A DNA stretch of 64,000 nucleotides, from NCBI GenBank assembly GCA_965202585.1, contig OZ241834.1, forward strand, positions 37,262,001 through 37,326,000, in the 5' to 3' direction. The translations under genes were made by a program, and so were the position numbers. The notes beneath the pieces were generated by a model, which worked only from the letters and a program-made list of their open reading frames with translations, did no database searches and was not told the DNA's origin. How positions within the stretch are numbered: position 1 is the stretch's first letter; each line of letters opens with the position of its first letter. The DNA is from Thalia democratica (taxonomy: Eukaryota). This document shows positions 28,914-55,900 of this stretch, in pieces.

Positions 28914-28985
28914 GGGGATATAGCTCAGTGGTAGAGCAATCGTCTGCAGATCGATAGGTCCTTGGTTCAAATCCGAGTGTCCCCT
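28914..28985 (+). tRNA. tRNA-Cys (GCA)
   Basis: GGGGATATAGCTCAGTGGTAGAGC...CTGCAGA...GGTTCAAATCCGAGTGTCCCCT; acceptor and T stems pair; T-run terminator at ~28989; one T-T mismatch in the anticodon stem. Confidence 0.9.
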
Positions 28986-30463
28986 CCCTTTTTTAAACCC
29001 AAAGATTTACAAACGAAATTCTAAGTACTCTAGAATCATAACAAAAACATTTCAATAAAAAAATTTGCTATACGTGAACTTGAGAAATTAGAATTTTAAT
29101 TTTGAACCGCCAGATTTACCGTTGGGTTCAGCTATATATTTCGATCCAAAAAGCGACTTTTTCTTATGTTAGTGGTTTGTAACAAGTGATTACGTCAGTA
29201 TGTTGTTACGTCATAAATAGTTTAAAAGAACTTGAATTCATCGAACTTAGTTGTCTCTAGTTTTTAGTACTATCTCATTTTAAATATTGTCACGTAAACT
29301 GCATAAATTTTATATTATTGTTAATATACTGTCCCGCAACCCTATGACGTCATAAAGGTTTTCCTATAGATTGCGTACAGTCACGCGGGGCGTCTATGAC
29401 GAAAACGGTTGAAAAATAAAATGTTCTTAAACTACTTAGTAATTGTAACTAATACATATTAAATAATAATTTTTATTTCTGTAAACGCACTTTAACTTTA
29501 ACCAATTAGAATTGTTATAAATGTTAAAAGTGTTAAAAATGTATAGATTTAACAGAAAGTAGATTTAAAATATAAGTTTATTGAACAACAAAAAAAACGC
29601 TCAAAATATTTGGTCCTAAGACCTGGTGCACGAAAAAACTTTTCGGTTATCGAGTCCTACATCACGAATACCTTTTAACGTCCTTTCCAGGACTATAAGA
29701 GAAACCGTAGCAAATATTTCACAAAAATAAAAAAAATCAATCTGGTTAAACTGACACTACTTTTTAAAGCAGAAGTAACAAAACTGTTTTTAAAACCGTT
29801 ATAGACCGATAAAATAACTACTTTCAAAAACTTTTAAAAGTTATTTGAAGTAATAACAAACAAGCTTGATTGTTGTTTACACTATATTTACTGTAAAGTT
29901 TTCTTTTTATATAAAAATATTCTGACTGTTGAGATCTTAAATTAAAAGATTGATACTTATGAACATTGATATCTCGGACAAGACGTTATCTATTTCCGTG
30001 GTGTATGACTCGATGACCGAAATATTCTTTTCTTTCAATAGATCCTTAGATACCGGGATTACTTTTTTGTCGTTCAATAAACAGCTTAACTGATTTGATA
30101 TTTATAAGAACTTCACATGAACTAGTATAAGTAACAATGCCAGTATTAATAAAACGTATGAAGATAAAACAAAACAGTCAGAAACTATCGGTGGTGCAAA
30201 TCGCGAAACAAAAATATATAATCAGTTGAATGACAAAAAAGTTCCAACGACCTGGTTTACAAAAAAACCCAATAGTCATACACTACGGATACAGTTTAAA
30301 GTTTTTCCAGGACAACAGTCCAGAAAGAAAATAGATGCTTACTTAGAAAAAAAAAAACATTTTGACGAGATCTTAGATACCGTACAATTCTGTAAATAAA
30401 AATGTCTGTAAAGATACTTCCATACTGAAAACCATCTTATAAAGTAAACCTACACAAGCATTT

Positions 30464-30781
30464 TGGATTGGTGTCACTTTTGCACAAAGAATTTTGCAAA
30501 AAAACACTTTAACACGAGTTGTCATTTTTGTACTTGGTCAATTTTGCACGATGCATCACTTTTGCACAGGGTCAGTTTACCACCAACTTAAATTTAATTA
30601 AAGTTAATTGGTAAGCATTTTCTCCTGCCGGCTTGGAGAGCGGCCGGAAACGATTGTAACGGAGTTTTACTACCACTGCTACACCTAACCCTTACCCTTG
30701 GTCGGTAACTGACGAATTGTTCTAAAATAGACGCCGTGCAAAAATTTCTTTGTGCAAAACAGACTCGTCCCTGAGTATTTT
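30464..30781. mobile_element. MITE-like element of the same family as 40127-40608
   Basis: gtcacttttgcac repeats at the left end, gacgccgtgcaaaa...tgtgcaaaac at the right end, GC-rich core with cctaacccttaccc. Confidence 0.6.
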
Positions 30782-34977: not shown

Positions 34978-37900
34978 GTTGTTTTTATTAAAAAAATAAT
35001 TTTCTTAGTATAAAAGGCTATAAATTTTGTTTAATATTTTATAAATGCATTACAGCTTGCGTTTTATTTTACATAATTTATATATTTGTTGTTAAATTTT
35101 TTAAATTTTTATGTAGACAAAAATTTTTTGTAATTTTTATGCAATTATATGATTATAAATTTTAAAATACCAAAATAATAAACTACTTTAGAAATTAATT
35201 TAGTTGAGTGAGAACGTATTAAGTAGATTAAAGATTAAACTGTTTTAAATATCTTTAAAAATAATATTCTGAGATTGTTTGTTGAGTTTGTTAATATTAA
35301 ATGTATATGTTTGTAGCGGGAAGACCTTCAGGACTGACACCTTCATGTATTCGAAGATTATAAACAACTGTTATAAATATTTTAATAATAATTCAATTAT
35401 TAAACATATTGATGGTAAAAAGTCTGAAAAGTTTATTAGAAAAAATAATTTACAATCACCATGTTATCCACAACACAATCATATTTCAAAACTTTGTGTA
35501 CTCAGCAGTTTTAAGTAACATTTATTATAATTCATCTTATAAATATTCTAGTGGGAAGACGCCACAGGATTAACACCTTCAGCAGGAAATTCAATGAGCT
35601 TGTCATCCGCAATCAAAGATGTTGACAACGCGATCAACCTGTTCTTCAACAATCAGTTTGGTGAGGCCAAGAAACTCTGCGCTGAAAAGTTTGTTTAGAT
35701 TTATTTTTAAAATTAATCAACTTCTACATATTTGTTCTCTGCACTGAAAAGTTTTTGATATGTTAAGTGTAATATATAAGTATTAGTTTAAAAATTGGCA
35801 GCCTTGACCATTGAACAAATGCTATATATTTGTTCCCTGCTCATAAACATTTGTAATATAACAAGTTGATTACATATTATGAGATCAGGGGTTGGCAGCT
35901 TTTTAAAATAAATATTTTTAAATGATTAAAACAGCTTACTTTTGGCTACATTTTTCTAGAAATATATTTTTGGCGACATATTAGTTTATAAGTATTGCTC
36001 TAAAAAACAAAAAAAAAGAAGAAATACAGTAATAAATTAACTTTTGATATTTGAATGTTCCCCCTAGGCCACAGATTGCTGCACTATAAATTCTTCAAAA
36101 GTTGTAAAATCACTTTGTATGATGAATTTTAGAAGAAACACTTTTAGAACATTAATAAGTCCAGAATAATTAACAATATAAGAAAAAAATTGTGAAAAAA
36201 ATAGTAGTTTGAAAATTTATGGTAAAAAAAGTAAGATTTTTGCAATAAAAAAGAATTCTGTCTAAACCAAATAATACAACTAATGCAATTTTGATTATTT
36301 ACTGCATCATTTTAAATAATTATAAATAAACATTTATTATAATTAACCACAGATCATCAACAAGTATTTATCACTCTATTGGAAAATCGACTTTACTTTA
36401 TTTAGAAGCTGTTATGACCTTTGACGCTGTAAGTTTTGATATTTTTACATATTTTTGAATTTTTTTGATTTTGAAATAAAACTGTCATTTGCCATGTATA
36501 TAAAAATTTTTTCACCAGTTTAATGTTGTTAAAACTTAATGATAAAACAAGTTACAATAAAGAAAGTTTTTACCTTACTCGTTCTATAAAATAATACAAA
36601 ATATTTATTATAGTTATCCAAGTATAACAAATTAATTATAGCCTATAGTTTTTTATACTTTTTCAAAGTAATTGATTTAATATAAACAGGTTAAGTAAAA
36701 ACATTTTAATATTTTCACCATATCTTATTATAACTAAAAACAAAGAGCAATATTAAAAATAAGTTGTTATTTATTTAAACTTTATTTGTTTTTTTAATTT
36801 GAAACTTTTTTTTACTAGAAAGACATCGAAGTTGCTATTACAAGTATTAAACAAGGACTCTCACTATGTGAAAAGTTAGTTTTATTTTTTATTAAATTGA
36901 AAGTATTAATAATTTCCACTATATGAAAAAGTTAGTTTTATTTGTAATGTAGTAAAAAAATTTAAAATAATTCACTAAGTAAAAAGTTAGTTTTATTTGT
37001 AATAAAGTAATAAAGTTAAAGAAATAGTCTTCTATAAAACTGATTAAAATATTAGTTGCATTTAAAATTTATGAGCTTCGATAAATAAGCTCAAACATTT
37101 TTTTTTTGTGAATGTTATTTATAAACTTAAACGAACTAATGATTTGTTGTGATTTGTTTGTGATGATACAATGACTACATTTTTTGTCTGATATTTCTTA
37201 AAAATCAATTTTTACTTTTATGCAAAACAGCCCTAATTCTTCTATTGACAGTTTTTGTGTTTTAGTAACAAAGTTGAGGGTTTACCACTAAAACTTAAAC
37301 TTTGACTGCTGATTTTTAGTTTTCTAGTTTCTTAAACTGATAGTATAAATGTAAAAACGAATGTTGGAAAGCATAATTAATTACATTTAATGTTTTTATT
37401 TAAATTAAATTTAAAATTTAAAATAAATTTTTAGTTATAGTTGAAAATACTTAGATCCTTTTGTTTAAACAAAGCTTGGTGTAAAACATTTTTAGATATT
37501 AACTTATACTCTAATTACTAACATAAAACTTAGTTAAACAAAAAAAAATACAGCATGAGAAAAAAGCAGAACTTAGTGGGAAGATTGGTGGGAACCTCTA
37601 CAAACACTTACACTGAAGGTAATTTTTACTTTTAATTTGAAATATATTATTTAAGCATTACCAAAAAAAATAAGCTTCAAGTTAGTATTAAAATGTAATT
37701 ATAATGGTACTTATTTAATGTCCAAGAAAAGTGGAGATAATGGTACCTTTTAGATGTGTTTTTAGAAGTTTTGAAAATAAACATGTTGATAATGCCACAG
37801 TGAGGCTCATTTGAACGTAAAAAAGTTGATTTAAAATTATTACAATTGTATAATCTGTTCTTCTTTATCTAAATCTAATGAACAAAACAAGTTCAAATTT

Positions 37901-40900
37901 ATTTAATTAATGCATAATAGTTTACATTCTCTGAGTTAAAGTTCACAAAATTTAAACTCCAACATTAAAAATAGTTTGTTAAATATATATTTTAATAATT
38001 TTTTAAAAATATTTTTCTGACCTTAACTTTTGTTTATTAAAGATCTGCTAAGTTTTTTGATTGAAAAAAATTCAAATAAGTTATTGAAATATTGCCTTAC
38101 GAAAATCTAATAAGAGTTTGAACTGTTGTAAGTTAAACTGTCTTGTAACTCTATGATACAGTTATTAAGTATTTTTTAATTAAGTTTTATATTTTTTAGA
38201 TGAATTACATGCAGAAGTAATTTATGCCGAACTGAATTTATTCTACGCAATGCTCACTTTTATACAGGTTGTTTAGATTATAATTAAAAAGTTTGTAAAA
38301 ATAATAATTTTATAAAATTGTTTAAGTTACAGTTGTTATTTTAAAGCAGAAGTCAATTAAGTATGTTACGCCTTCGTAATTTTGTTTCAAAATTATATTG
38401 TACACTGTTTTTTAATATTTTACATTACTAGTTTAAAAAACAGTAATTTAGTGCTACTGATTGTAAAAACAATTCAATCAAATAGAAATTTACCACTTTA
38501 ATGCATCTATAATTTAAAACTGCTATTATAAGATGTATTTAAAATAATTTTATAAATGTAAAAAATTAAATAAAAAGCTTAACAAAAAAAGGTACAAAGT
38601 CTACATAATGATAGGTTAATTTTTTAAAAAATAATTTATATTTTTTTTATAGGACGAAAGCGTGATGAATCTTGTAAAAGGAGCGTTGAAGATGAAACAA
38701 GGTTACAACAGCTACAAGAAATGCGAATGTTTGGACCAAGACATGACAAACATGTGTAATAACAAGCACTTCCAAGGAGCCATAAACCTCGGCTGTGGTT
38801 GTTTTAACATTGTTAGTTGTTTTGTTAGTTGAACACAAAGTTGATTAATTAAAGACATTTGTTAAACCAAAACTTTAACAATTGTCTTTAAAAGAACCTA
38901 CAAACATTTTCAAATATTGTTACCTATTGGCTAGGGCTGTTTAAACATTGTTACTTGTTTTAATAATCATAATTAGAAAAAAATAACAAAAAACCAAAAC
39001 TGAAACGTTTATTAAGACTTTGTTTTAATAATTACCTGGAAAATAACTTACAAGTATCTAGCCAATAAAACTTTTAAATGGTTTTTTAAAGTTTACTTTT
39101 TTTAGTGTGAATAAAAAAAAAATTGTCAGAGTATTTCTTAAAAAGAAGTAAAAAAATGTATATTTTCTTTTTGTATGCTAACTATGTAAATGTTTTCTGA
39201 TAAGACAAACCTAATGTTTAAAAAAAAGATTTGGTGAAATTTATTTTAATCTAATTGTCTGCACCCAGTTATTTTCAGTTATACATTCTTGGTTAATATT
39301 TTTTCTTTATATTTGAATAAAAATTGCTATAAACAAGTACATGAATATTTGTTCTATAGGGCATGTAATTTTTACATTATAAAGCAAGGTTCCCTAAAGT
39401 GAACCATTTTGCCACCTTGGGGGCAATTATAGAATTTTAGGGGGCCATAAGCAGCAAAGGGGCTAAAGAGGGGGGCATGAGCAGTAAAGGGGCCCCATGG
39501 GGGCTATGAGGCCATAATTTGAAACTCATACTAGATATTCTGGAGTTGATGGTGAAGAGCAGATAAAAAATAAGGTCCTAGGTATATTTAGGGGACACTA
39601 AATATTGTGGGAAGTCATAAGGTGTAAAAGAGGGAGTCATAAGGCCATAATTTTAAACTTACACCAGATATTCTGAAGTTGACGGTTAAGGGGAAAAAAT
39701 TAAGTGAATTTAGGGGAATTTTTTTGAGAGATATTGTTGGAGGGGGCCATTGCTATTTTTATTTCTTTAAAAGGAGGCTTTAAAAAATAATCTTAGGGAA
39801 ATCCTGTTAAAAAGTCATATCAATAATAAAATTTATATTAAACTTATAATAAAGATAATAAGTAATTTATCTTTTAGGGAATGTCATTACTACCAGCCAG
39901 AGTAGTGGCAATACTGAAGTGGATAGGCTTCGATAGCGACAAGAAAATAGGATTACAACAATTAAGCGATTGTTACCTGAACTCAAACGTGAGGAGTTCG
40001 CTTTCTTCACTGTTCGTACTTGGCTATCACCTGTTCATATGTTCGTTTGTCGGTTAGTTGATGTTGATATTTGTATACTTTTATTTTATTGTCTTCGTTG
40101 TTCGTACTTGGGTGTCACCTTTTCATGGGAACGGGTCACTATTGCACGAGGGGACACTTTTGCACGAAGGGTCACTTTTGCACGAAGGGTCACTTTTGCA
40201 CGAGGGGACACTTTTGCACGAGGGGACACTTTTGCACGAGGGGACACTTTTCACGGCAACCTTTTTCACGCAGGGTCACTTTTGCACGAAGGGTCACTAT
40301 TGCACGAGGGGACACTTTTGCACGAGGGGACACTTTTCACGGCAACCTTTTTCACGCAGGGTCACTTTTGCATAAAGAATGGACTTAAAAAGGTACGCTC
40401 CAACGTTAGTTACGCGTAAAGTACGCACTAAATCTCGAAATAAACAAAATAGAAAGTTTTATGAAGTACTTGACGCGGATACGTACTTGAGGGAGGTGCG
40501 TACCTCTTAAAGTGCTTTCTACAAAAGTGACGCCGTGCACAAGTGACCTTGTGTGCAAAAATGTCCCCTCTTGCCAAAGTGATGCTCGTGTAAAATAGAC
40601 ACCTACCCAGTTGTGGACTCAAAGACTGAAAAAATAATATAATTTTCCAGGAACAGCGGAACTAGAATGCGACGTTGAACTTTGCACGTCGATAGTTGAC
40701 AAAATGCTGAACAAATACCCGAACGGAATTTATTTTCATTTCTTTGCCGGCAGAATTCAACAATTTGTTGGTGATTTCGACAAGGTAAGAATTGAGTGGT
40801 GAAATCTAAAATAAAACATTAAAACTTGTATTCAGCAATTTGTTATAGATTTTGACAAGGCTAGAGAGTTAATTAGAAAAATAAAAAACACCTTATACAG

Positions 40901-43900
40901 TCATTTGGTTGGCGATTTATATAATTGATCATCTTATCATTAACAAAATATTAATTGTTTTTTTGATATGTAATGATATAATAAAAGTAATAAAAATGCA
41001 CAACTTTTAATCACCAGTTCTTTACATTTGATAAAGAAAATTTGAACTTACTTTTACTCACAGCAAAGTTCAGTTAGTAAAATTAAAATGTTTAACACGT
41101 TCGTTCAAATGATTAATCTATTTTAAGTATGACTTATGTCACGAGGTGTTAAGTAAAGTATGAAAAAAAAGTTGCACATTATTGATTAACTTTGCTACTT
41201 TTAAAATCTTTAATTAACTCTTTTATTTTGAGCTTAAGAAGATTTTAAAATAGAGTTTTATGGATATTATTTTTTATTTTAAAGAGTAGTAAAAATACAG
41301 CTAAGACGTTGTTTAAGTTAAGAATCTAAATTTAAATTTAGCAATTTTTTTTAACTAATAATTATATTTATCTTTTATGAATTTTTTAAACTTTGACCTC
41401 TATTTAACTGTAGGTAATGTACAAACAATTTATTTATTCTTATTGTTTTCTGAACTTTTATAATAAATAGTGTCTGTTTTTATTTTTAACAACTGTATAA
41501 TTTTATAAGGTAATTGAGTTTATTTTGAAAGCATAAACAGTTTTTTTTAAAAATGGTTCATTTTCTGTAAGACTAATTAAACTAATTTTAAGTTTTTATT
41601 TTAGGGTTTTTCATAATTTTAAAAATACTAATGAAAAAACATCTATCTAGTACATACTTTTTAAGTTACAAAAATAATGTAATTCACAAATTATTAAGGT
41701 AGAAAGTGATTGAGTATAAGAAATAAAAATATTCCAACATCAAAAATAAGTTAATTATAATTAATTTCTTTTAGCCACAGTTTAAAACGCAAACAGCTTA
41801 AAGTTAAAAAATATGTACTGAAAAGTTTTAAGACCCTTTAAAGTACTTTGAAGCTAAAATGATTTTTTTTTTGTTAAAATGTAATAAAACATTTTAATCA
41901 AGAAATATAATTTTACGTATTAAAGTTTTCAACAAATAGTGTGCATATTGTTTGAATTGTTTATAATTTAAACTTAATCAACTTAAAATCTAAAAGAAAT
42001 TGGATGTTTGCCTTTTAGTAAAATGTTTATGAAAATCAGTTCAAAAATATTTATTTTATTTGATTGAAAAATAACAATTTAAAATAATAAGAAGTTCAGA
42101 CTTTTAATAGAGCCATCGTATGAGTTTGAAAATTAATATATGATGTTGTCTAGACTTGTCTAGTATTATAAAATAAAAAATACTAGTTATATCACAATAT
42201 TATTTCTTCAAACAAGTTATAACTGTGTTTTTATTTTAACTTGTTGAACAATGTTTAAAATAGTATTAAATAGATGTTATTTTTGTCTTATGACAGATAA
42301 CAGTTGTTATAATTTCATAGACTTTTTTTAAGATCATCCATATGATTAATAATATTATCAAAAGCAATAAAAAAGTCTATAAAGTTAAACAATTTAATAA
42401 ATACAATGTTATTTAACAAGTTTTATGCATATTTTCAGGCATTTGAACATCTTAAAAAAGCTTCATTATTACAAAATGAGTCGCAAAATACATTTTAAAA
42501 AAGGCAATAGAACATTTAGAAAAAGTTAAAAAATAAGAAATAAACTTATTTCTATTTTTAGGCAATAGAACATCTTGAAAAAGCTTCCTCCCTTCAAAAT
42601 GAGTGGCAACAGTTTTCACATTTTTGCTACTGGGAACTTATGTGCTGCCACATTTACAAATTACAATACAAAAAAGCTGCGGAATACGCTGAATTACTAG
42701 TGTGAGTTTTTTATCTTAAATAATAAAAATAATTACAAATTGTTAGTGTGAGTTTATAATATTTAATAATAATATATTTTCAAATTACAATACAAAAAAG
42801 CTGCGGAATATGCTGAATTACTAGTGTGAGTTTTTAATATTAAATAATAAAAATAATTACAAATTGTTAGTGTGAGTTTGTAATATTAAATAATGAAATA
42901 TTTACAAATTACAATACAAAAAAGCAGCTGAATATGCTGAATTACTAGTGTCAGTTTTTTATCTTAAATAATAAAAATAATTACAAATTGTTAGTGTGAG
43001 TTTATAATATTTAATAATAATATATTTTCAAATTACAATACAAAAAAGCTGCGGAATATGCTGAATTACTAGTGTGAGTTTTTAATATTAAATAATAAAA
43101 ATAATTACAAATTGTTAGTGTGAGTTTGTAATATTAAATAATGAAATATTTACAAATTACAATACAAAAAAGCAGCTGAATATGCTGAATTACTAGTGTC
43201 AGTTTTTTATCTTAAATAATAAAAATAATTACAAATTGTTAGTGTGAGTTTATAATATTTAATAATAATATATTTTCAAATTACAATACAAAAAAGCTGC
43301 GGAATACGCAGAATTACTAGTGTGAGTTTTTTATCTGAAGTAATAAAAATTACAAATTGTTAGTGTGAGTTTATAATATTTAATAATAAAATATTTACAA
43401 ATTACAATAAAAAAAAGCAGCTGAATATGCTGAATTACTAGTGTGAGTTTTAATATTAAATAATGAAAGTTACAAATTGTCAGTGTGAGTTTATAATATT
43501 TAATAATAAAACATTTACAAATTACAATACAAAAAAGCAGCTGAATATGCAGAATTACTAGTGTGAGTTTTTTATCTTGAATAATAAAAATTACAAATTG
43601 TTAGTGTGAGTTTATAATATTTAATAATAAAATATTTTCAAATTACAATACAAAAAAGCTGCGGAATACGCTGAATTACTAGTGTGAGTTTTTTATCTTG
43701 AATAATAAAAATTACAAATTGTCAGTGTGAGTTTATAATATTTAATAATAAAATATTTACAAATTACAATACAAAAAAGCTGCGGAATACGCTGAATTAC
43801 TAGTGTGAGTTTTAATATTAAATAATGAAAATTACAAATTGTTAGTGTGAGTTTATAATATTTAATAATAAAACATTTACAAATTACAATACAAAAAAGC

Positions 43901-46900
43901 TGCGGAATACGCTGAATTACTAGTGTGAGTTTTAATATTAAATAATGAAAATTACAAATTGTCAGTGTGAGTTTATAATATTTAATAATAAAACATTTAC
44001 AAATTACAATATAAAAAAGCAGCTGAATATGCAGAATTACTAGTGTGAGTTTTAATATTAAATAATAAAAATTACAAATTGTTAGTGTGAGTTTTTAATA
44101 TTTAATAATAAAATATTTACAAATTACAATACAAAAAAGCTGCGGAATACGCTGAATTACTAGTGTGAGTTTTAATATTAAATAATGAAAATTACAAATT
44201 GTCAGTGTGAGTTTATAATATTTAATAATAAAATATTTACAAATTACAATACAAAAAAGCTGCGGAATACGCTGAATTACTAGTGTGAGTTTTAATATTA
44301 AATAATGAAAATTACAAATTGTCAGTGTGAGTTTATAATATTTAATAATAAAATATTTACAAATTACAATACAAAAAAGCTGCGGAATACGCTGAATTAC
44401 TAGTGTGAGTTTTAATATTAAATAATGAAAATTACAAATTGTCAGTGTGAGTTTATAATATTTAATAATAAAACATTTACAAATTACAATACAAAAAAGC
44501 AGCTGAATATGCAGAATTACTAGTGTGAGTTTTTTATCTTGAATAATAAAAATTACAAATTGTTAGTGTGAGTTTATAATATTTAATAATAAAATATTTT
44601 CAAATTACAATATAAAAAAGCAGCTGAATATGCAGAATTACAAGTGTGAGTTTTTTATCTTAAATACGAAAAAAAAATGTTGTTAGTTTTTTATTAAATA
44701 ACAAAATATTTACAAATTACAATACAAAAAAGCAGCTGAATATGCAGAATTACTAGTGTGAGTTTTTTATCTTGAATAATAAAAATTACAAATTGTTAGT
44801 GTGAGTTTATAATATTTAATAATAAAATATTTTCAAATTACAATATAAAAAAGCAGCTGAATATGCAGAATTACAAGTGTGAGTTTTTTATCTTTAATAC
44901 GAAAAAAAAATGTTGTTAGTTTTTTATTAAATAACAAAATATTTACAAGTTACAATACAAAAAAGCAGCAGAGTGTGCTGAATTATTAGTTTGAGATATT
45001 GTATTAAGTAATAAAAAAATAATTATTAGGTTTTATCAAATAACAAGGTATATACATATTACAATATAATAGGCTTCAGAATATGCTAAATTATTAATGT
45101 GATTTTTTAATATTAATTGGTAAAATGTTTACAAATTATTATAATAAGTTTTAAATTAAATAATAAAGTATGGAGCAAATACTTCTACACATAACTTCAA
45201 TAAATAATAGTTAACAGAGTAAGTTTAACAGTAAAAAATGTTAATACATTTATCTTCAATAAATAATAAAAAATTAAATAGATAGTAGTTAATAAAATAA
45301 ATAATAACAGTGAACAATCTAGTTAGAGTAAATGTCTATATACTTATATTAAATAAAAATTAAATGATAAAATAATATATAACAAAATGTATAATAACAG
45401 AGAACAATCTAATTGGAGTAAATGTCTATATACTTATCTTAAATAAATAAAAATTAATGTAATAAATAACAAAATGTATAATAACAGAGAACAATCTAAT
45501 TGGAGTAAATGTCTTTACACTTATCTTCATGCTTGCTTCTTATACGAAAATGACAGAACAGATCCTAGAGTCATGGAGCTAATGTTGTAAGTTTTATTTT
45601 ATATTACTAAAAACTGATTAAAATATAGTTTAAACCAACAAATTTTATGAAGTTTTAGCAAGTTTGCTAGAAAATATGATGTAACTGAATTAGGTAACTT
45701 TGTTAAGTAACAGTAACAGCTTAATTATTTTGATAAAACAAGCTGTTAGAAATAAGTTTAAAATTATGTTAATGTGTTACTTAGTTTTATCGAATATAAA
45801 TAAAACACTATTATTTCTATAAAAAGCACTTAACTATCTTTTCTTTGTTTTTAAAAATAAAATGTTTAATGGTTTATTTTGTGTAAATTATTTTTTAAAA
45901 TTAATCTTAATTTAATACAAAAAACTAACTAAATAAACAGTTAGTACAAAAACTTCAATTATTATTAGATTAATTTAATTGTATGACATTTTAACCAATT
46001 CACACAGTTTTTAATACAAAATTTTTAGTTTTTTTTATGTGTTATACCCTTTATGTAAATAAAATAGTTTTTGTTTATAACATACTTAAATACTAATACT
46101 TATATAAAAATGAAGGTATCTTTACATTAAAAAATTATTTTACATAAAAAAAACTTAAAACTATTTGCTCAATAATTAAAACTAAACAATTATCATTAAG
46201 ATCGGTTCAAGACAAATAGAAGAAATTGTCAGTTTGTTTTTTTTAAATTTTTAACTTAGTATAGAAAATATATACTTTTAGTACAAAATAAATCAATAGA
46301 TAATTTTAAATCAATAATTAACGTTATAACTTCAAATATTTTCAGATCGGTTCAAGGTAAAAAGAAGAAAGTATCTGGAAAATCACTTCCGATTGAGAAG
46401 TTTGTCTGCAGAAAAGCGAGGAAGTTTATCGAGCAAGGCGGGAGATTGGTTGCCCCAACTATGGTTCGTTTAATTAAATATGTAAAATATAATGATAAAA
46501 TAAAAAAATATTATACTAATAATGAAGTTTATCGAGCAAGGCGGGAGATTAGTTGCCCCAACTATGGTTCGTTTAATTAAATATATAAAGTATAATGATA
46601 AAATAAAAAAATGTTATACTAATAATGAAGTTTATCGAGCAAGGCGGGAGATTAGTTGCCCCAACTATGGTTCGTTTAAACTAAACATGTATAATATAAT
46701 AGTATAATATTATAAGTGTATTAATAATAATAAAGTTTATAGAGCAAAGCGATAACTTGTTGCTCCATGGTTTGTTGTTTTTTATTCAATTTAATGTAAA
46801 GTCTTTAACATGATTAGTCATACAATTCATTGTTGTTTGTAGACTTTTCTATAAACAAACTTGTACAAAAGTTCATAAAGTCAAGTAATATGTATAAATT

Positions 46901-49900
46901 TGTTTAGTTTAAGTCAAGAATATATAGTTAATAGTTATACAAGTTTATATTTTTGAATAAACTAATAAAGAAGAAAAAAAAGTTTAAAACTTGATTTTGT
47001 TCATTTCCTTTGTAAATTTACAGTAATCAAACTAAAAGTATCTAATTATACTTACAATAATCAACGTTTATGTTTTTTTAAAAAGTTGTGGTATTAAAAA
47101 AAAATGATTAATTTTTCTGAAGTAAGTGGCTGTTATTAATTACATGTTTAGTCTATTTCCGTAAACTAAAAACATTTTTATAAAATTTCTATTGAAATGT
47201 TAAAATAAGAATAGTTAATTATGGCCCATTAAAAGTAGTTAAAGACTTACGTCTGGCAATAAATCTGTAGTAAATGTCATGAGAATCAAAATTATTTTAT
47301 AAAGCTTATAAATTTTCTACTAACATTAGAGTTAACATCTATATTTAAGTTACTAAAAGGTAAATTGAAATTTTATTGGGTAAAAATTAAAGGGTAAGAA
47401 ATAAGTTTCAAATTAAATAAAAGCTTATTAACGTCACGAATTGAATACATTAATTTTTCATAAAGTCAGATGACTACTGTAAAACACATTAAACGTTTTA
47501 TACTTTAAAATATAAGTTCAAATATATAATTTCAAAAGGGCAGTGTAAAAAAAAATATTTTTTCTCACCTACCAAAAGATGTTTCGCGAAATTTGAACTT
47601 GAATGTGATAAATAAACAGGCAAAAGTAGACAAAATGAATTATTAAAAGTTGTTTATGCTTGCATAATATATAAGTCTTGTAAATTACAAGTAGATTATG
47701 TAAGTTACAAGATACGCATATTGTTCGTTTGCTAGCTATTGCATCTATGGTTTCCCACGAATATCTGTTATGTTTATGTACGCAGTTTTAACTGTTCGAC
47801 ATAATTGGAATTAAATTTGTATTTTCATAAATTTAATTTTGAAATAAAGTTAAATTTTTCCAATTTTTTTATCTATTTTATGAACTTTAAGTATTCTTTA
47901 ACATTGAGTTGTTTATAAAACTTCATAAAATTAAAATTTTCAAATATATATAATTTGAAATTTAAGTTGTATTTTAATTTTTTGTTTTTATTTTTTATTT
48001 TTTAGTTTGTTTTTTATGGATTTTCTTTTGTGAATTAAGTATTTAATTGGTGCTGTGTTTTTATTACTTTGTTTCTTTACTGTATATTTTTATAACAATT
48101 AAATGCTAATTAAACTTACTTTATTGTTTATATATATTGTTACTATTGCAACTTTTTTTAAAATTATTGTGAACGGTTTTTGCATAACTTTAATTATTAA
48201 ATTAGTACACAGTGAATTTAAAGGTTTAATTATATATACAACTTTAATAACAGAAAAACAGTTTTATAATGTGCATTTGAAATTTAAGCTTTAAGTATTA
48301 ACCTTATGGTTGTTTTAACTTAATAAGTTTATTAACTTTTGACCTAAATTTTCTTATCTTCTTTACTTTGTATATCACTTAAAAAGCATTGCTCCTTTTA
48401 AGGAATGACTTACCTAATATAGCTAAATTGAAATTTGATTTTCTTCTTAGAATAATTAAAGATAACTTGAAAAAAATCTTCTGAGTTTAAAAGTACGTTT
48501 TAAGTTCTTCTACATACTTCGACATAAAAAAAACATTATAAAAAAATATAAATGAAATCAAACAAAAAAAAGTTGAGATAAACCATATTTAAGTCTTAGT
48601 TATTTTGAAAATTTTTTTTTTATTATTGATAGTTTTAAAAAATACTTTGTCTCTAATTTACTCAAAAATTAAAAGTATATACCTACTTTTTTGTACAAAA
48701 AGTTGATAAAAGATATCACTTTCTGTATGTTAATTAAAACTTAAAAAAAATCTTTTTTCTTTTGGTAAAATATTAGCCACAAGTCTGCAGACTTAACAAG
48801 TCTTAAGTTTTGGGCAGAGATATCAAAACAAACAAATGCATGTTTATTTTATGCTACTTATAACAACAATGTCGCTACAAAGTTTAATAACCTTTGTGAT
48901 CAACTGTTGATCTTTGACTTTTGTAATAAAGATTAACACTTGATATTTAATCTTTGTTATTATAAAGGTTTAATCTAAAGTTCAACAATTTTGTCAGTAT
49001 TTCTTTAAAGCTGGCTATTTTCTTTTAATTGTACTTTGTTGTTTAAAGTAGTACACGTTAACTTTTAATTAACATTCGATCTTTGAACTTTAGTAGTAAA
49101 AATAACGACTTATTTTTTTCTGTATTATTACTTAGCGTTTCAAAATTTAATTTTTAATACTTTTTAAGTATGATGGATATTTTGAAACATGTTTCTGAAA
49201 CCAACCTTATTAAATACTAATTTAGAAGTTTAAGTTTTTTAATCCAAAATATAAAGAAAACTTATGTTATTGATATAATGTATCTGTAAAAATTTGACCT
49301 ATTGCTTAAAAATTAAAATTTTATTCTTTTTAGTTAGTAAACGAAGTTAATCAAATTTTAGCAAATGTAAGCTATGTAAACTTATTGTTTCAAAATAATT
49401 AAAAAAATTAAGCTTTTTATTAATATTATCTTCATAAGAAGTGCGAGTTTTTACACAATGCTTTAAATTGATTTCATACTTATTTAGTTGTGCTTTATTT
49501 GATTTAGTTTTGAAGAGCAGAATTTATAACTTTTTATAAAAGTCTGCTTAATGTTTAAGTTTTTCCTTTTGTGCATATCTTGAAATTAAGAAAAATATTT
49601 TCCAACTAAACTTTTATTGTGTTCTTAAAAATAATATTTTTTTTCAGTCATTTAAAAAGTACTTAAACATTTTTTTTCAATAAAGCTGAAATTTTTATTA
49701 AATTAAAAAAAACTAATATAATACTACTCCAAGTTATAAGATATATAAATCAAAGTTAAAACAAAAAGATTGAAAACGCTGTTTTATTTTTCATAGAAAC
49801 TTAAAGTATTAAGAAACACTGTTTGTTTAAAATCATGTAATTGCTGTCTGATGATTAATTGTTATAAAGTTAAAAATAGTTTGATTACTACAAAATAAGT

Positions 49901-52900
49901 GTGTGAGTAATTAAATTGAGTTTAATAAGTATTTATCAAATTAAATTTAATTCTACAAAAATTAAAAGAAAACTTAGATGGGTGAAAACCTTAAAAAAAA
50001 ATTAAAGAGTTTGATAAAAAGCAATGAAAAGTTGTCTTTTTTAGTTTGGAGTCAAAATATATTTTCAAATAAATTGAAAAATTCCTACAAATTCAATAGA
50101 ATAAATTATTATTGCCGGGAATTTCTATAGCTTGAAGTATTTTAAAACATTGTATAAATTTACTTTTTAAAACAAGTATTTATAACCTTTTAAATCAGGT
50201 ATCAATCCTGAGAAATGACTAAAATTTTTAAAATAGCATTTTTACATATTTTTTTAGGAATTCATAGCTGTATGGAGCCAGGTATCAATGTTGAAGAATA
50301 ATCAAAATGTTTAAAAAAATGTTAACTTTTTTTTTATAGCAGTGTGCAATCAAGTATCAATGCTGGAAAATAACCTTAATTATAAAAAGATATATATTTA
50401 TTTGTTATTTTTTTCAAGAATTCATAGCTGTATGGAACCAAGTCTCAATGCTGAAAGTTAATTAAAATAAGATTTTCATAATTTTTTTTTTAGGAATTCA
50501 TAGCTGTATGGAATCAAGTCTCAATGCTGAAAAATAACCCTGAATTGAGATTCCAACACTTGACAAAAATTTGCAACGAACTAGATGAGTTAAATGGAAT
50601 AAAAAAAGAACAAAACAAGCATTTGGACAACAGTAAGTTTCAAAATAATAATGTAGATTTTTTTTTTATTTCGAACCAAATAAGCATTTGGACAATAGCA
50701 AGTTTAAAAATATAATTTTCCAAGTGCACAAATACTGTTTTTAGTTTGTAAAAAGGATAAAATTAAGTTCCAATATTACTATAGTTTTAAAGTTGTAAAA
50801 AAAATTATGATAAATCTATAAACAGAATTACTGTTTTCTGTTGTTTTAATTAAAAAACTAGCATATTGTCTTATAGTCATATTTTTACTATGAGTTTCCA
50901 GTCTACTAAATGACAAAACTATAATTTGTTACAAATATACAATTTTCCCACATAGTCTTGGCAAGGCATGAGATTTAAAGGTTTTTTTATTATTTTTAAT
51001 TTATATTAATTTTTACAGACAGATTTACAGAAAAACGTATTTAATTATTTTTAATTTATATTTTTTTACAGATTTAGCAAGACACGACACAGGAAAATGT
51101 TTTTACTACTACGACGATTTCTGTTTATTGGAAAAATTAAAAGGAAATTTAATGGAGGCCGGAGAAAAATATTCGGTCGCTGAAATTTGCTATAATGGTG
51201 TTAAAGAAAAGTTTGTTAATTTATTTTATTACTAATTATAAATATATTCAGTTGCTGAAATTTGTTATAATGGAGTTAAAGAAAAGTTTGAAATTTTTTT
51301 TCAATTAGCTATACATTAACTATTATTAAAAATGAAAAAAAAGTTTAAATTTGTTAGAATGATGTAAATAAAGAATTTATCATTTCTTTTTTTTTAAAGG
51401 TATTGTTAATAATTATCATAAACAAATTTTACTGCTGAAAAGTATATTACAGTACAAACTGGTAAAATATTTAATAAATTTTTATTCAAACTAGGTGAAT
51501 ATTACTTATTGTTAAAAATATATAATACAAACAAATACCTAAATATATGTGATACTGGATCAAAAATCCATAAAAATAAAGTATAATGCTGCCAAATTTA
51601 AATTTATTTTGAATAAAATATACAGATACACTTATAAAATTAAGATTAAAATTAATACTAAGGTTTTATTCAAATTAATGGCTGTTTTATAAAGTTATAA
51701 TAAAAACTCTATTTAGATGAATTTAAATACTTCAGCTTGAAAAATATGAAATTACAACTTTATCAATAGATATATCTACTCTGTTAAAATAAAGTAAATA
51801 AATTTATGAATTAAAATAACGTGACCTTTTTAGTCGTAAAATTGTAAAACATACTGTACTAAATATTTGTTTTTGAACAAACTAATCTGTTTATTGTAGA
51901 ACAAAACATTTGACCTTTAAAAACAACTGATGTATTATTTAGTTTGTTTTTCCGCGTAAAACTTTTTATTGATTTAAAAATATAATTACCTTCCAAAACT
52001 TTAGCTGTCTGTTTTTAGACAAACTAAAAAGTTTGATTAATCAGAATTGATAAGCTTTAATTTGAAAGGGTATTGAAAAAAGAAACTAAAACACAGTTTA
52101 TTTTGTAAAGTTTTATATAAGTTATAAGCTAGGTAATTTTATAAAGTTCATTGCTAGAATAAAACAAAATAAAAAATAATGTAATTGTAATAAACGTATA
52201 TACTTTTTTTAAATGTTTGGGAATTGCTTAAAAAGCTGATAAAAATTATTTTATTATGATAGGTTTAATTTCAACATTCACTTATTATAAAGTTTTTGTT
52301 TTATAATCACTAATATTTGAACAATTTATAATAAAAGTAATATGAATCATTTTAATTTACAGACTTATTTAATTTAACCAGTCTTCAGTTTAGTAAAACA
52401 CAATTAGAATTTTGCTATAGTGTATTAAATGTTTTCAATTTTTTCATTTAAATGAATAAAGTTCAAACTGCAAAAAGCTTATAATTAAAAGAGCAAGTCA
52501 GTTTAATGCGTTTTTATTTAAATGAATAATTCAATCTGTTCAATCAATATTTTTGGCGCTGAATTTTTTAAAATCTTTTCTTCTACAATGAAAGGCAATT
52601 TGTTATTTTGAATGGCTTCTTTTATTCACATCAATGTAAAAAATATTTAAAGTGTTTTGATTAGTTAGTTTAAAATAAAAAACAGTATTTCAAATTAGTT
52701 TTAAAGAATATGGTTTTGAAATATAATAGTTATTAGAAAAAAAATGCTTACTTTGATTTTACTACTGAGTTTAGTTTAATTTGTTTTTAATTTTAAATTA
52801 AATTAGTACATATCATGCTTTGTACATATCACTCCTAATAAAGTCTTATCTAATAAAAAGTCTGATGCCTTCTAATATTTAAATATGATCTGATATTAAA

Positions 52901-55900
52901 ACTACTGTGTGTAAGATTAAACTACTTTTAAAAGTTTTAGAGATATGGTATCACCCATTTATTTTTAAAACCTAGAAATATTCAAATATAAAAGTATATG
53001 TAACAAATTTAACTCACATATTTACTTTTTAAAAACTAAAAATCATCATATATTGTTTTGATTTAGTTAGGTATTTTTTACTTCTCATTGTAACTTATAC
53101 AAGCTTCCCTTTCTATACAAGCTTTTCTGTAGAACATAGTTCATAGTAACAGGAAATCACGATTGTAAAGAAAGTTTCATTTTGTAAAATATTTAAATAT
53201 TAAGTATAAAATTATATTTATCTGTTTTAAATGTTTAAAATTTTTAACACTAAGTAGCTTAACTCATATATTTTAAACTAAACGTTTGTAGTTTAAATTT
53301 ATTGTATATTAAATATTTTTTAGTATAGTTTTAAGTAAATGTTTATATGATTTAAAAAATAATGTTTTAATTTTCGACTTAGGTATTTTATAAGAAACAA
53401 AAATATTTGTAGAAGTAGTTATCAAAACAAAAAATCTATTTATAAAACGACTACAATAGTTTAAGTTTGTCTTTTAGTTTTTCTACTCACACTATCAAAT
53501 TTATCACACATCAATTATTTGAAAGTTATGTAAAAAATTTATATACAATAGTTCTGCTAAATTGCTTAATTTAAGGAGACATACGTATAACACTTAACTT
53601 TTGTTATAGTACGGCCAATATCTGAAGAAAAAATGTTTTTAAAGTTCTATAAATTTTTGAATTTTAGTTTAAATTCAATGCAGTAAATGTATTTTTTATC
53701 AACAAAATCTGTTTTATAGTTTTTAAGTTTTTTAAATTAAACCAAAATTAGATAATCTCTGTGTTATATTGTTCTACAACTATATAGTTTTGATAATTTC
53801 AGCTACAATTATTAAGTATGTCAAAGTTTTAAGTTAAAAATGATAAATAAATAAACATTTTCAGCTACAAATACATAGTAAAAGACCAATATGTAACAAA
53901 TAAATAATAATAACAATTAATAAATTATTTTCCAGTTACAAGTACATTGTGAAAAATCACTATGTAGCTACTAAATACTAATAATAAATTAATTATTTTT
54001 ACTTACAAGTACATTGTGAAAGATCGTTATGTACCGAATAATAATAATAAATTAAATACTTTTCTAGTTACAAGTACATAGTAAAAGATCACTATGTAGC
54101 AATTAAAGAATAATAATTAATTATTTTATAGTTACAAATACATAGTGAAAGATCACTACGTAGCAATTAAATAATAATAAATTAATTATTATATAGTTAC
54201 AAGTACATTGTGAAAAATCGTTATGTAAAAACTTTGTAATAAATTAATTATTTTTAGTTACAAGTACATTGTAAAAGATCACTATGTAGCAATTAAATTA
54301 TAATAAATTAATTATTTTCTAGTTACAAGTACATTGTGAAAGATCATTATGTAAAAACTTAGCAATAAATTAATTATTTTCTAGCTACAAGTACATAGTG
54401 AAAGATCATTATGTAAAACTTTGTAATAAATTAATTATTTTCTAGTTACAAGTACATAGTGAAAGATCACTACGTAGCCGCTTCTGCGATGGCCGATTTG
54501 TCAATGTTGTTGGTGAAACAAGAAAAATTTGAAGAAGCCCAACAAATAGCCAAATACGCAAAGTTTGTTTATCTTTTATATAAAGTTAATTAGTTTATTT
54601 TAATTAGTTTGTATGGGGCTATAATAAAACTAAAGGTATGAAACTAGTTATTTTATACTGTAGATTTAAAAGTACTGTTTTATTCAGTGAAAAATATGGT
54701 TTGTAGCAGGACTTGAGGTTGTAAATTTTAATCCTTCTAAAGTAATACTTATTAATAAACTTTAATTTGTTTTTAGCTATTTAGAGGTCTACCATGACTT
54801 TTTTTTTGTATTTAGAAAAACGAAATTTTTTAATAACTGCATCTGTGATATTACATTTTTTATACATAATTTTTAGTTAAAAATATGGATTAACATTCCA
54901 TAAACTTTTTACAAGTTATTAAACATGAAAAACTTGTTCTAAAAAATATTAAGAAAAACTTGTTTTAAGTTCCTTCATCCAAGTTTTTCATAAAAAATTA
55001 GTCGTTGTATTGAAAAGTTCTGCATAGTTGCGTGATAAAAATCTCTTTTAACTTAAGATTTTTAGTAAAAACTTTTATATTAAAGTTGATTTAAAGATAT
55101 AACTTTGTATTAAAGCTCTTATGAAAAAATGTTCAGAATAACTTGTTTAAATTCTCTCACTAAAGTTTCATAAAATAAGTGTTTAAAAGTTCTGCAGAGA
55201 ATTGGTGTAAAACTTTTAATCACGATTGAATTAGCATTTATTTAAATACCTTTATAAAATGGTTTATTTAAAGGTATAATTTCGTATTAATGCTTTTAGT
55301 GTTATTTTTTTTGTTATTATTTATTAGTATTACACATGAGATATCTGTACTAACCTTTAAAAAAGTTACTATTATTATAATGATCGTGTTAATAAATATA
55401 TATTTTGCTTATTTACATCATAAACCGATATTTTTTTATTGATTTTATGAATTTGCGTTAAAATGTCTCTAATTTATATTGATATCTCATATCTTTTCAT
55501 TTAAAAATTAGCTTATTTGATAAAAATAATTTAAAGTCTAACTATACGTTTGCTAACAGTATTTTAATAATTTTAGTCAAATTTTTAACATTTTATTACA
55601 GTTTCAATAAATCAATCTTGTCATTAAAATCCTTTTTATCTAAATTATTTCTGAATTATATATATTTTTATAAATGTTTACAAAAATTTAAGTAGTTATA
55701 GTTTAAATGTTGTCAGAAAAATTAATTAACATTTTTTTTAGTTAAAGTTTAACTAAACATTGAAAAAATTAATAAGACTATTGTTTTAAATTTTCTCTTA
55801 TTGTCGAACAATTGAATTATTCTTGATTAAACACTGCTATAAACTATGTTATTGTTTATAAAGCACTTTCCTTTTAAATTATACATGTAGAACAAACTCA

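Follow-up and report, generated by a model that had tools for sequence, protein, structure and literature searches.

Why should copies of exon edges that lie within introns differ from their exons so often by silent changes? This question is raised by a TTC39B-like gene in a 64,000-nucleotide (nt) stretch of the Thalia democratica genome (assembly GCA_965202585.1, contig OZ241834.1, positions 37,262,001 to 37,326,000 of the forward strand), referred to below as the window and used for all coordinates. At 15 of the 30 exon-intron junctions of this gene, the adjacent intron contains one or more copies of the exon edge together with its splice site, which we call echoes. A first-pass annotation, made from the sequence alone, had read the echoes as intronic DNA bearing a coding-selection signature of its own. 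Our analysis points to a different answer, namely that the echoes are probably neutral fossils which keep earlier synonymous codons, and that the coding signature belongs to the live exon.

The host gene lies in a strongly AT-rich window (20–30% G+C) and was modelled as follows.

34939–57976, + strand: TTC39B-like gene with 16 coding exons and 583 codons (hand-built model with a stop-free translation; junctions coinciding with the mRNA blocks of three contigs from a relative).

Its product belongs to the TTC39/Iml2 family, as judged by full-length similarity and by the Pfam domain PF10300 (Iml2-TPR_39), which was found on the relative's product (P0001). Between P0001 and the window's product, 15 of 584 codons differ, and the closest matches with a name are TTC39B proteins from the ascidians Clavelina and Ciona (48–49% identity), which places the host among the tunicates. 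An exact look-up of the exon-8 open reading frame in public assemblies returned nothing on record.

Echoes were located by BLAST, comparing each exon edge with its own flanking intron, and comprise exon fragments of 14–52 nt, the duplicated units measuring 55–145 nt. Counting each variant (site and base) once per family, so that array units were not multiply counted, we obtained a first tally of 60 synonymous, 55 non-synonymous and 3 nonsense differences over 519 exon-derived sites. The part of this tally contributed by exon 11 depends on the choice of its acceptor. According to the relative's mRNA the true acceptor is AACAG at 45483–45487; the most obvious open frame has an AG immediately before it, and the exon starts 18 nt upstream of that AG. 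With exon 11 corrected, the 115 distinct differences divide into 57 synonymous and 58 non-synonymous over 506 sites.

This synonymous share (51%) compares with 19–25% expected for random substitutions (P between 2e-9 and 3e-15), the expectation being drawn from three spectra: a uniform one, the intronic differences to another organism, and the co-duplicated intron parts. Per site, differences amount to 0.15 at codon positions 1–2, 0.37 at position 3 and 0.31–0.36 in the co-duplicated intron. The splice-proximal intron can serve as a rough guide only and not as the sole neutral yardstick, since the live copy itself keeps its donor and acceptor signals under constraint. Whether the class was GC>AT, AT>GC or A<>T, positions 1–2 changed at about half the co-duplicated intron rate and position 3 at about 1.25 times that rate; because the bias is seen within every class, it is no base-composition effect.

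The echoes are therefore where the first-pass annotation had placed them and the synonymous excess is real; its wording that the differences are mostly synonymous was too strong for a share of about one half, the examples listed having been favourable ones. Taken one by one, its counts are approximately right. The exon-10 echo at 43995 indeed shows five synonymous changes out of five. For the exon-14 echo we found four synonymous changes plus one non-synonymous change (AAA>ATA) instead of three synonymous out of three, for the exon-8 echo four plus one instead of five plus one, and for the exon-13 echo at 50258 four synonymous codons plus one non-synonymous codon instead of five plus two. The exon-15 units, three of which had been described as changed at synonymous sites only, have one to three such changes, yet some of them also carry GAT>AAT or CAC>CGT. 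A synonymous bias is lacking in the echoes of the exon-7 tail (7 synonymous, 11 non-synonymous), the exon-4 tail (0 and 3) and the exon-12 head (2 and 3), as well as in the second exon-14 echo (2 and 5 codons) and the distal exon-10 units.

A comparison of exon with echo sums two branches, and since the live-exon branch is under purifying selection, the pairwise ratio of non-synonymous to synonymous rates (dN/dS) falls well below 1 even for an echo under no constraint; a dN/dS criterion must therefore be applied to the echo branch alone. In the model that we favour, small tandem duplications (55–145 nt) across an exon-intron junction would repeatedly have put an exon edge and its splice site into the adjacent intron. 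Use would be confined to the copy that adjoins the remainder of the exon, the other copies being non-functional and decaying neutrally in the manner of pseudogenes, while the live exon, under purifying selection, would accept synonymous substitutions only. The difference between exon and echo would then be the sum of a random branch (the echo, at about three non-synonymous changes to one synonymous) and a purely synonymous branch (the exon), which yields the synonymous excess. Young echoes, having had little time to decay, would show almost only the exon's own silent changes, and in old echoes non-synonymous changes would be at least as frequent as synonymous ones.

To assign the differences to branches we made use of three spliced mRNA contigs (L001–L003; 1.5–2.1 kb) from marine metatranscriptome assemblies. 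They were reached by a profile-free search with exon 8, which led to P0001 (584 amino acids, identical over exon 8), whose cluster has three members. The blocks of these mRNAs match the exon boundaries of the gene model one for one. Over the coding sequence, relative and window differ at 201 of 1752 sites (11.5%), distributed 18/10/173 over the three codon positions, and in 174 synonymous against 15 non-synonymous codons. The outgroup is thus a close homologue that is expressed and under constraint; it most likely represents the orthologue of a sister species, and its mRNAs differ among themselves at about 5% of third positions. A further outgroup, whether closer or bracketing, was sought and rejected, as the next relatives share at most 57% amino-acid identity and are too distant for synonymous sites.

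When the 115 differences were sorted by the state carried in the relative, two very different profiles emerged. Where the relative has the exon's base, which places the change on the echo branch, the differences number 25/24/25 at codon positions 1/2/3 (over 169/170/167 sites), with 18 synonymous to 56 non-synonymous. Where the relative has the echo's base, placing the change on the exon branch, they number 3/0/26, with 29 synonymous to 0 non-synonymous (P = 3.5e-10 against an even spread). A third base in the relative leaves the branch unresolved for 0/0/12 differences (10 synonymous, 2 non-synonymous). At none of the 58 non-synonymous differences does the relative carry the echo's state.

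The echo branch therefore shows no sign of constraint of its own. The density at position 3 relative to positions 1–2 is 1.04 (0.59–1.50 by bootstrap over families), compared with about 12 for the live gene against the relative, and its synonymous share of 24% lies inside the neutral 19–25%. Nonsense variants account for 5 of the 58 non-synonymous events, where 10.6% (about 6) would be expected under neutrality, and three echoes have 1-nt insertions or deletions. The echoes show no non-synonymous deficit on their own branch, their reading frame is not consistently open, and the proposal that they carry a coding-selection signature of their own is not upheld. In contrast, another suggestion of the first-pass annotation, that the echoes form an archive of past synonymous versions, is borne out in that form: in 29 of the 57 synonymous differences the relative's mRNA has the echo's codon, that is, the echo retains an ancestral state which the functional copy has lost.

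The association between echo and relative holds when base composition is controlled for. At third positions, 'echo differs' is associated with 'relative differs' after stratification by exon base (Mantel-Haenszel odds ratio 3.7; Cochran-Mantel-Haenszel P = 0.00067), and the association holds at exon-T and exon-G sites.

The echoes entering this analysis, and the live exons next to the larger arrays, are the following.

35311–35345, + strand: echo of the acceptor and exon-2 head with a 1-nt deletion (BLAST; polarised with the relative).
35737–35754, + strand: echo of the exon-2 tail and donor (BLAST).
36917–36948 and 36972–37006, + strand: two echoes of the exon-4 tail and donor, with non-synonymous differences only and one 1-nt insertion (BLAST).
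38900–38961, + strand: old echo of the exon-7 tail and donor, 69% identity (BLAST; events as given above).
40092–40126, + strand: echo of the exon-8 tail, exon end missing (BLAST).
40830–40865, + strand: echo of the exon-9 tail with a broken donor (GC) (BLAST).
42423–42486 and 42502–42525, + strand: two echoes of the acceptor and exon-10 head (BLAST).
42562–42701, + strand: live exon 10, whose last 50 nt are the array template (gene model and the relative's mRNA blocks).
42702–45125, + strand: array of 20 units (109–124 nt) of exon-10 tail, GTGAGT donor and intron head (TRF, unit alignment).
45212–45487, + strand: three-unit ladder (~87 nt) of intron tail, acceptor and exon-11 head, one unit with TGG>TAG (TRF, BLAST).
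45488–45586, + strand: live exon 11 (the relative's mRNA block 45488–45584 and a frame check).
46196–46230, + strand: echo of the acceptor and exon-12 head with AAG>TAG (BLAST).
46464–46767, + strand: three-unit ladder (103 nt) of exon-12 tail and GTTCGT donor (TRF, BLAST).
50230–50493, + strand: three echoes of the acceptor and exon-13 head (BLAST).
50673–50712, + strand: echo of the exon-13 tail with a broken donor (GC) (BLAST).
51240–51301 and 51347–51394, + strand: two echoes of the exon-14 tail and donor (BLAST).
53846–54445, + strand: array of 9 units (~65 nt) of intron tail, acceptor and exon-15 head (its first 33 nt) (TRF, BLAST).
54446–54562, + strand: live exon 15, which uses the last acceptor of the 9-unit array (gene model and the relative's mRNA blocks).

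Single or double echoes thus occur at exons 2, 4, 7, 8, 9, 10 (acceptor), 12 (acceptor), 13 (donor) and 14, ladders of two to three copies at exons 11, 12 and 13, and Tandem Repeats Finder (TRF) reported arrays of 120 nt x 19.6, 103 nt x 3.2, 87 nt x 3.2 and 65 nt x 9. In every ladder the most diverged unit is the one farthest from the live exon (42652–45125, 53846–54445, 45212–45487, 51240–51394), and judging from this order of units the arrays seem to grow or to homogenise at their exon-proximal side. The exon-10 array, when its units are aligned, is a mosaic of types in which the distal units are the oldest.

How the live exon moved away from its echoes is best followed in this array. In the relative's mRNA the exon-10 tail reads GCA GCA GAG TAT GCT .. 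TTA TTA. The oldest well-preserved echo (44941) shares the relative's codons except for one echo-specific change, an intermediate unit type has GCA GCT GAA TAT, and the live exon and the youngest copies read GCT GCG GAA TAC .. TTA CTA. Compared with the relative's mRNA over 50 sites, the old unit at 44941 has 3 differences and the live exon has 6. As far as the sequence tells, the layers of the exon-10 array would record successive silent substitutions of the exon, in that order. The same applies to the 'two-hit' leucine swaps of the first-pass annotation: at exon 10, CTA in the relative stands against CTT in the exon and TTA in the echo, so that a single step on each branch suffices. In the first exon-14 echo, all four silent variants are present in the relative's mRNAs, and its sole non-synonymous variant is absent from them.

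Several observations weigh against assigning the whole signal to the exon branch in this way. The unpolarised two-branch model predicts a synonymous share of 36–40% where 51% was observed (P = 0.0007–0.0135, best spectrum); a directional rise in the exon's G+C content at third codon positions (GC3) and the capture of diverged alleles are candidates for the extra silent differences. Taken alone, this unpolarised model under-predicts the synonymous share and was judged insufficient until the outgroup analysis. The outgroup itself is saturating, being 30% different at third positions, and its GC3 is 0.30 against 0.41 in the window's gene. At exon-C sites alone the association between echo and relative is not significant, and a T shared there may be a parallel C>T change. 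Correction for saturation moves about 8–10 events to the echo branch, raising its third-position changes from 25 to about 33–36, its ratio of position 3 to positions 1–2 to about 1.4–1.5 and, with the best spectrum, lowering its dN/dS to about 0.75; these figures leave room for a mild excess of synonymous changes remaining on the echo branch. The first-pass annotation had itself named a dN/dS near 1 as the outcome that would speak against selection on the echoes, and on the echo branch the value is about 0.75–1.05. The relative could, lastly, be a recent paralogue, in which case its use as an outgroup is unaffected.

The silent changes assigned to the exon branch are strongly directional: codons for Tyr, His, Asn, Phe and Cys show T>C, those for Leu TTR>CTR, and four-fold codons A>T. 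Such a trend suggests that GC3 or the use of preferred codons has risen in the window's lineage, the direction at C sites not being secure. Between the gene and L001–L003, sites with C in the exon and T in the relative number 60, those with the reverse 17. Behind the GC3 gap between gene and relative there may be biased gene conversion or a change in codon usage particular to one lineage.

Among the alternatives, the capture of alleles fares best, and we regard it as a real if minor contender. Here the echoes would stem from other haplotypes of a hyper-polymorphic population, and their differences would be mostly standing synonymous polymorphism of the exon and not changes that arose after the duplication. 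The sequencing runs on record are DNA contig runs of the sample and of one other organism. Allelic diversity is indeed deep: over 46760–51420 the sample's second haplotype differs from the window by 7–10% in introns plus many insertions and deletions, and contigs of a second organism (organism B) differ by 5–11%, with many variants common to the second haplotype. At three positions (35570, 51178, 51190) the echo variant recurs as a polymorphism among the relative's mRNAs, which, as noted, vary at third positions, and the unpolarised synonymous share lies above the simple two-branch model. Allele capture is, however, unneeded for most of the signal, since the layers of exon 10 are ordered towards the relative's state, as substitutions over time would be, and 4–5 silent sites per 16 codons are about three times the measured diversity. 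We therefore retain the neutral-fossil reading, to which the capture of diverged alleles by unequal exchange may add further silent differences.

A second proposal of the first-pass annotation was that array units cycle through the functional slot, or convert it, so that lineages with non-synonymous changes are purged and the echoes are indirectly purified. Exchange between units is evident. The exon-10 tail has four silent sites whose states combine in five ways, all four gametes being present for one pair of sites, and six array units are identical to the exon tail. Across 124 nt, all that separates the live junction unit from the unit at 42900 is a 10-nt patch with three silent sites plus a G>C in the donor, a pattern that resembles a short conversion patch. 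The units at 42900–42960 and 43148–43210 have GTCAGT for GTGAGT, a donor-killing G>C, and are otherwise almost identical to the live junction unit. The mosaic of units and the patch thus support exchange, while the flat profile of the echo branch gives no sign of purification: positions 1–2 are not depleted, stops occur at the neutral rate, a Tyr>Phe variant persists in six units and a Leu>Gln variant in two, and the same pattern is found in single echoes outside arrays. Of this proposal the exchange of sequence stands, and a purifying effect on the echoes, which we could not detect, is an unlikely source of the signal.

We consider it very improbable that the data are explained by mutation bias alone, in which AT-biased and CpG mutation would strike the echo's G/C-rich third positions and so imitate a synonymous signature. 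Many differences do set NNC in the exon against NNT in the echo, and with a relative that is AT-richer at third positions a shared T could be parallel. Within the same echoes, however, C>T changes per C site amount to 0.40 at position 3 and 0.15 at positions 1–2, and therefore most third-position C/T differences cannot be echo decay; moreover, the excess is present in the A<>T and AT>GC classes too, and the association with the outgroup withstands both stratification and restriction to exon-T and exon-G sites.

That the echoes are expressed as coding sequence through alternative splice sites, a further suggestion of the first-pass annotation, is scarcely credible on sequence grounds and from the relative's mRNAs: many echoes retain canonical sites (about 16 units have GTGAGT, and acceptors read TTTCAG and TTTTAG), but use of the echo site would bring an in-frame stop or a frameshift in 47 of 48 units, which are all the placeable ones (the exon-8 echo, lacking its exon end, being unplaceable), read-through from exon 10 runs into TGA one codon on, stops and indels are present in the echoes, and the relative's mRNAs join only the outermost sites (42701 to 45488, 51210 to 54446), echoes being absent from these contigs.

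If the echoes are fossils, why do they sit at exon edges? Nearly all local direct repeats in the approximately 21 kb of introns belong to exon-edge families, the exceptions being a transposon-like array (40133–40377), a pair at 39499–39699 and an extension of the exon-2 echo. No echo families were found in other genes of the window, where the four local direct repeats outside the TTC39B-like gene are old and dispersed. It is striking that half of the junctions of one gene are duplicated and the intron interiors are almost free of such copies. We would entertain, as a doubtful extension of our model, that the ladders are more than debris and mark a junction-specific mutational process, for example repair or recombination aborting where conserved exons meet introns that differ by 7–10% between haplotypes, together with patch exchange feeding old synonymous variants back to the live exon. 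Edge concentration, extreme heterozygosity and patchwise unit exchange are each seen, and the data show no connection among the three.

The intronic exceptions have features of their own. The array at 40133–40377 in intron 8 consists of 18-nt motifs (GGGACACTTTTGCACGAG-like) with an 86-nt higher-order unit, and a related cluster lies about 10 kb upstream at 30460–30760; these GGGACACTTTTGCACGAG-like arrays are probably a dispersed repeat or a miniature inverted-repeat transposable element. A G+C-rich block at 39350–39760 in the AT-rich intron 7, with internal repeats at 39499–39566 and 39632–39699, is likely a transposon fragment. Upstream of the TTC39B-like gene, a tRNA-Cys (GCA) gene lies at 28914–28987 on the + strand.

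Apparent selection on intronic echo DNA is thus a tempting false lead, and a simple polarisation test settles the question. Read as dated fossils of exon edges that have stayed in place, echoes allow synonymous substitutions to be polarised where no close outgroup genome is at hand, and could likewise polarise a possible lineage-wide rise of GC3 or of C-ending codons.

The closest known counterpart is the 37-bp variable number of tandem repeats in intron 7 of human F7, where the boundary between exon 7 and intron 7 falls within the first unit (Borensztajn et al. 2006, PMC1557585). There, exon end and donor are repeated head to tail; of the identical 5' pseudo-sites lined up in this way, the most upstream alone is used (PMC1557585). 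The exon-10 and exon-12 arrays share exactly that anatomy, with units arranged head to tail and a terminal unit that spans the live exon-intron boundary. Unlike F7, half of the junctions of one gene are concerned here, the acceptor side too, with units of 55–145 nt in up to 20 copies and in several age layers; the silence of the pseudo-sites is in our case predicted from the relative's mRNA and the reading frames rather than shown by minigenes.

Pseudogenes offer a second comparison. As neutral molecular fossils of a functional parent, they show a pairwise dN/dS below 1, whereas the unconstrained branch, taken by itself, is neutral and keeps ancestral states. Echo and live exon behave likewise, the free copy being neutral and the constrained copy changing at synonymous sites only. 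The echoes are, however, exon fragments of 14–52 nt in several dated layers, located in introns of the same gene beside their parent, and not whole-gene copies elsewhere.

Introns are also modelled to arise by tandem duplication of a segment that bears a splice site, and here, too, tandem duplication carries the splice signal. In contrast to that model, the introns of the TTC39B-like gene pre-exist at the relative's positions, and the duplications lie inside them, producing no new intron or exon. What is unusual in this gene, against the background of all three systems, is the scale and the stratified layering, with half of the junctions of one gene affected, on donor and acceptor sides alike, and with up to 20 units in one array.

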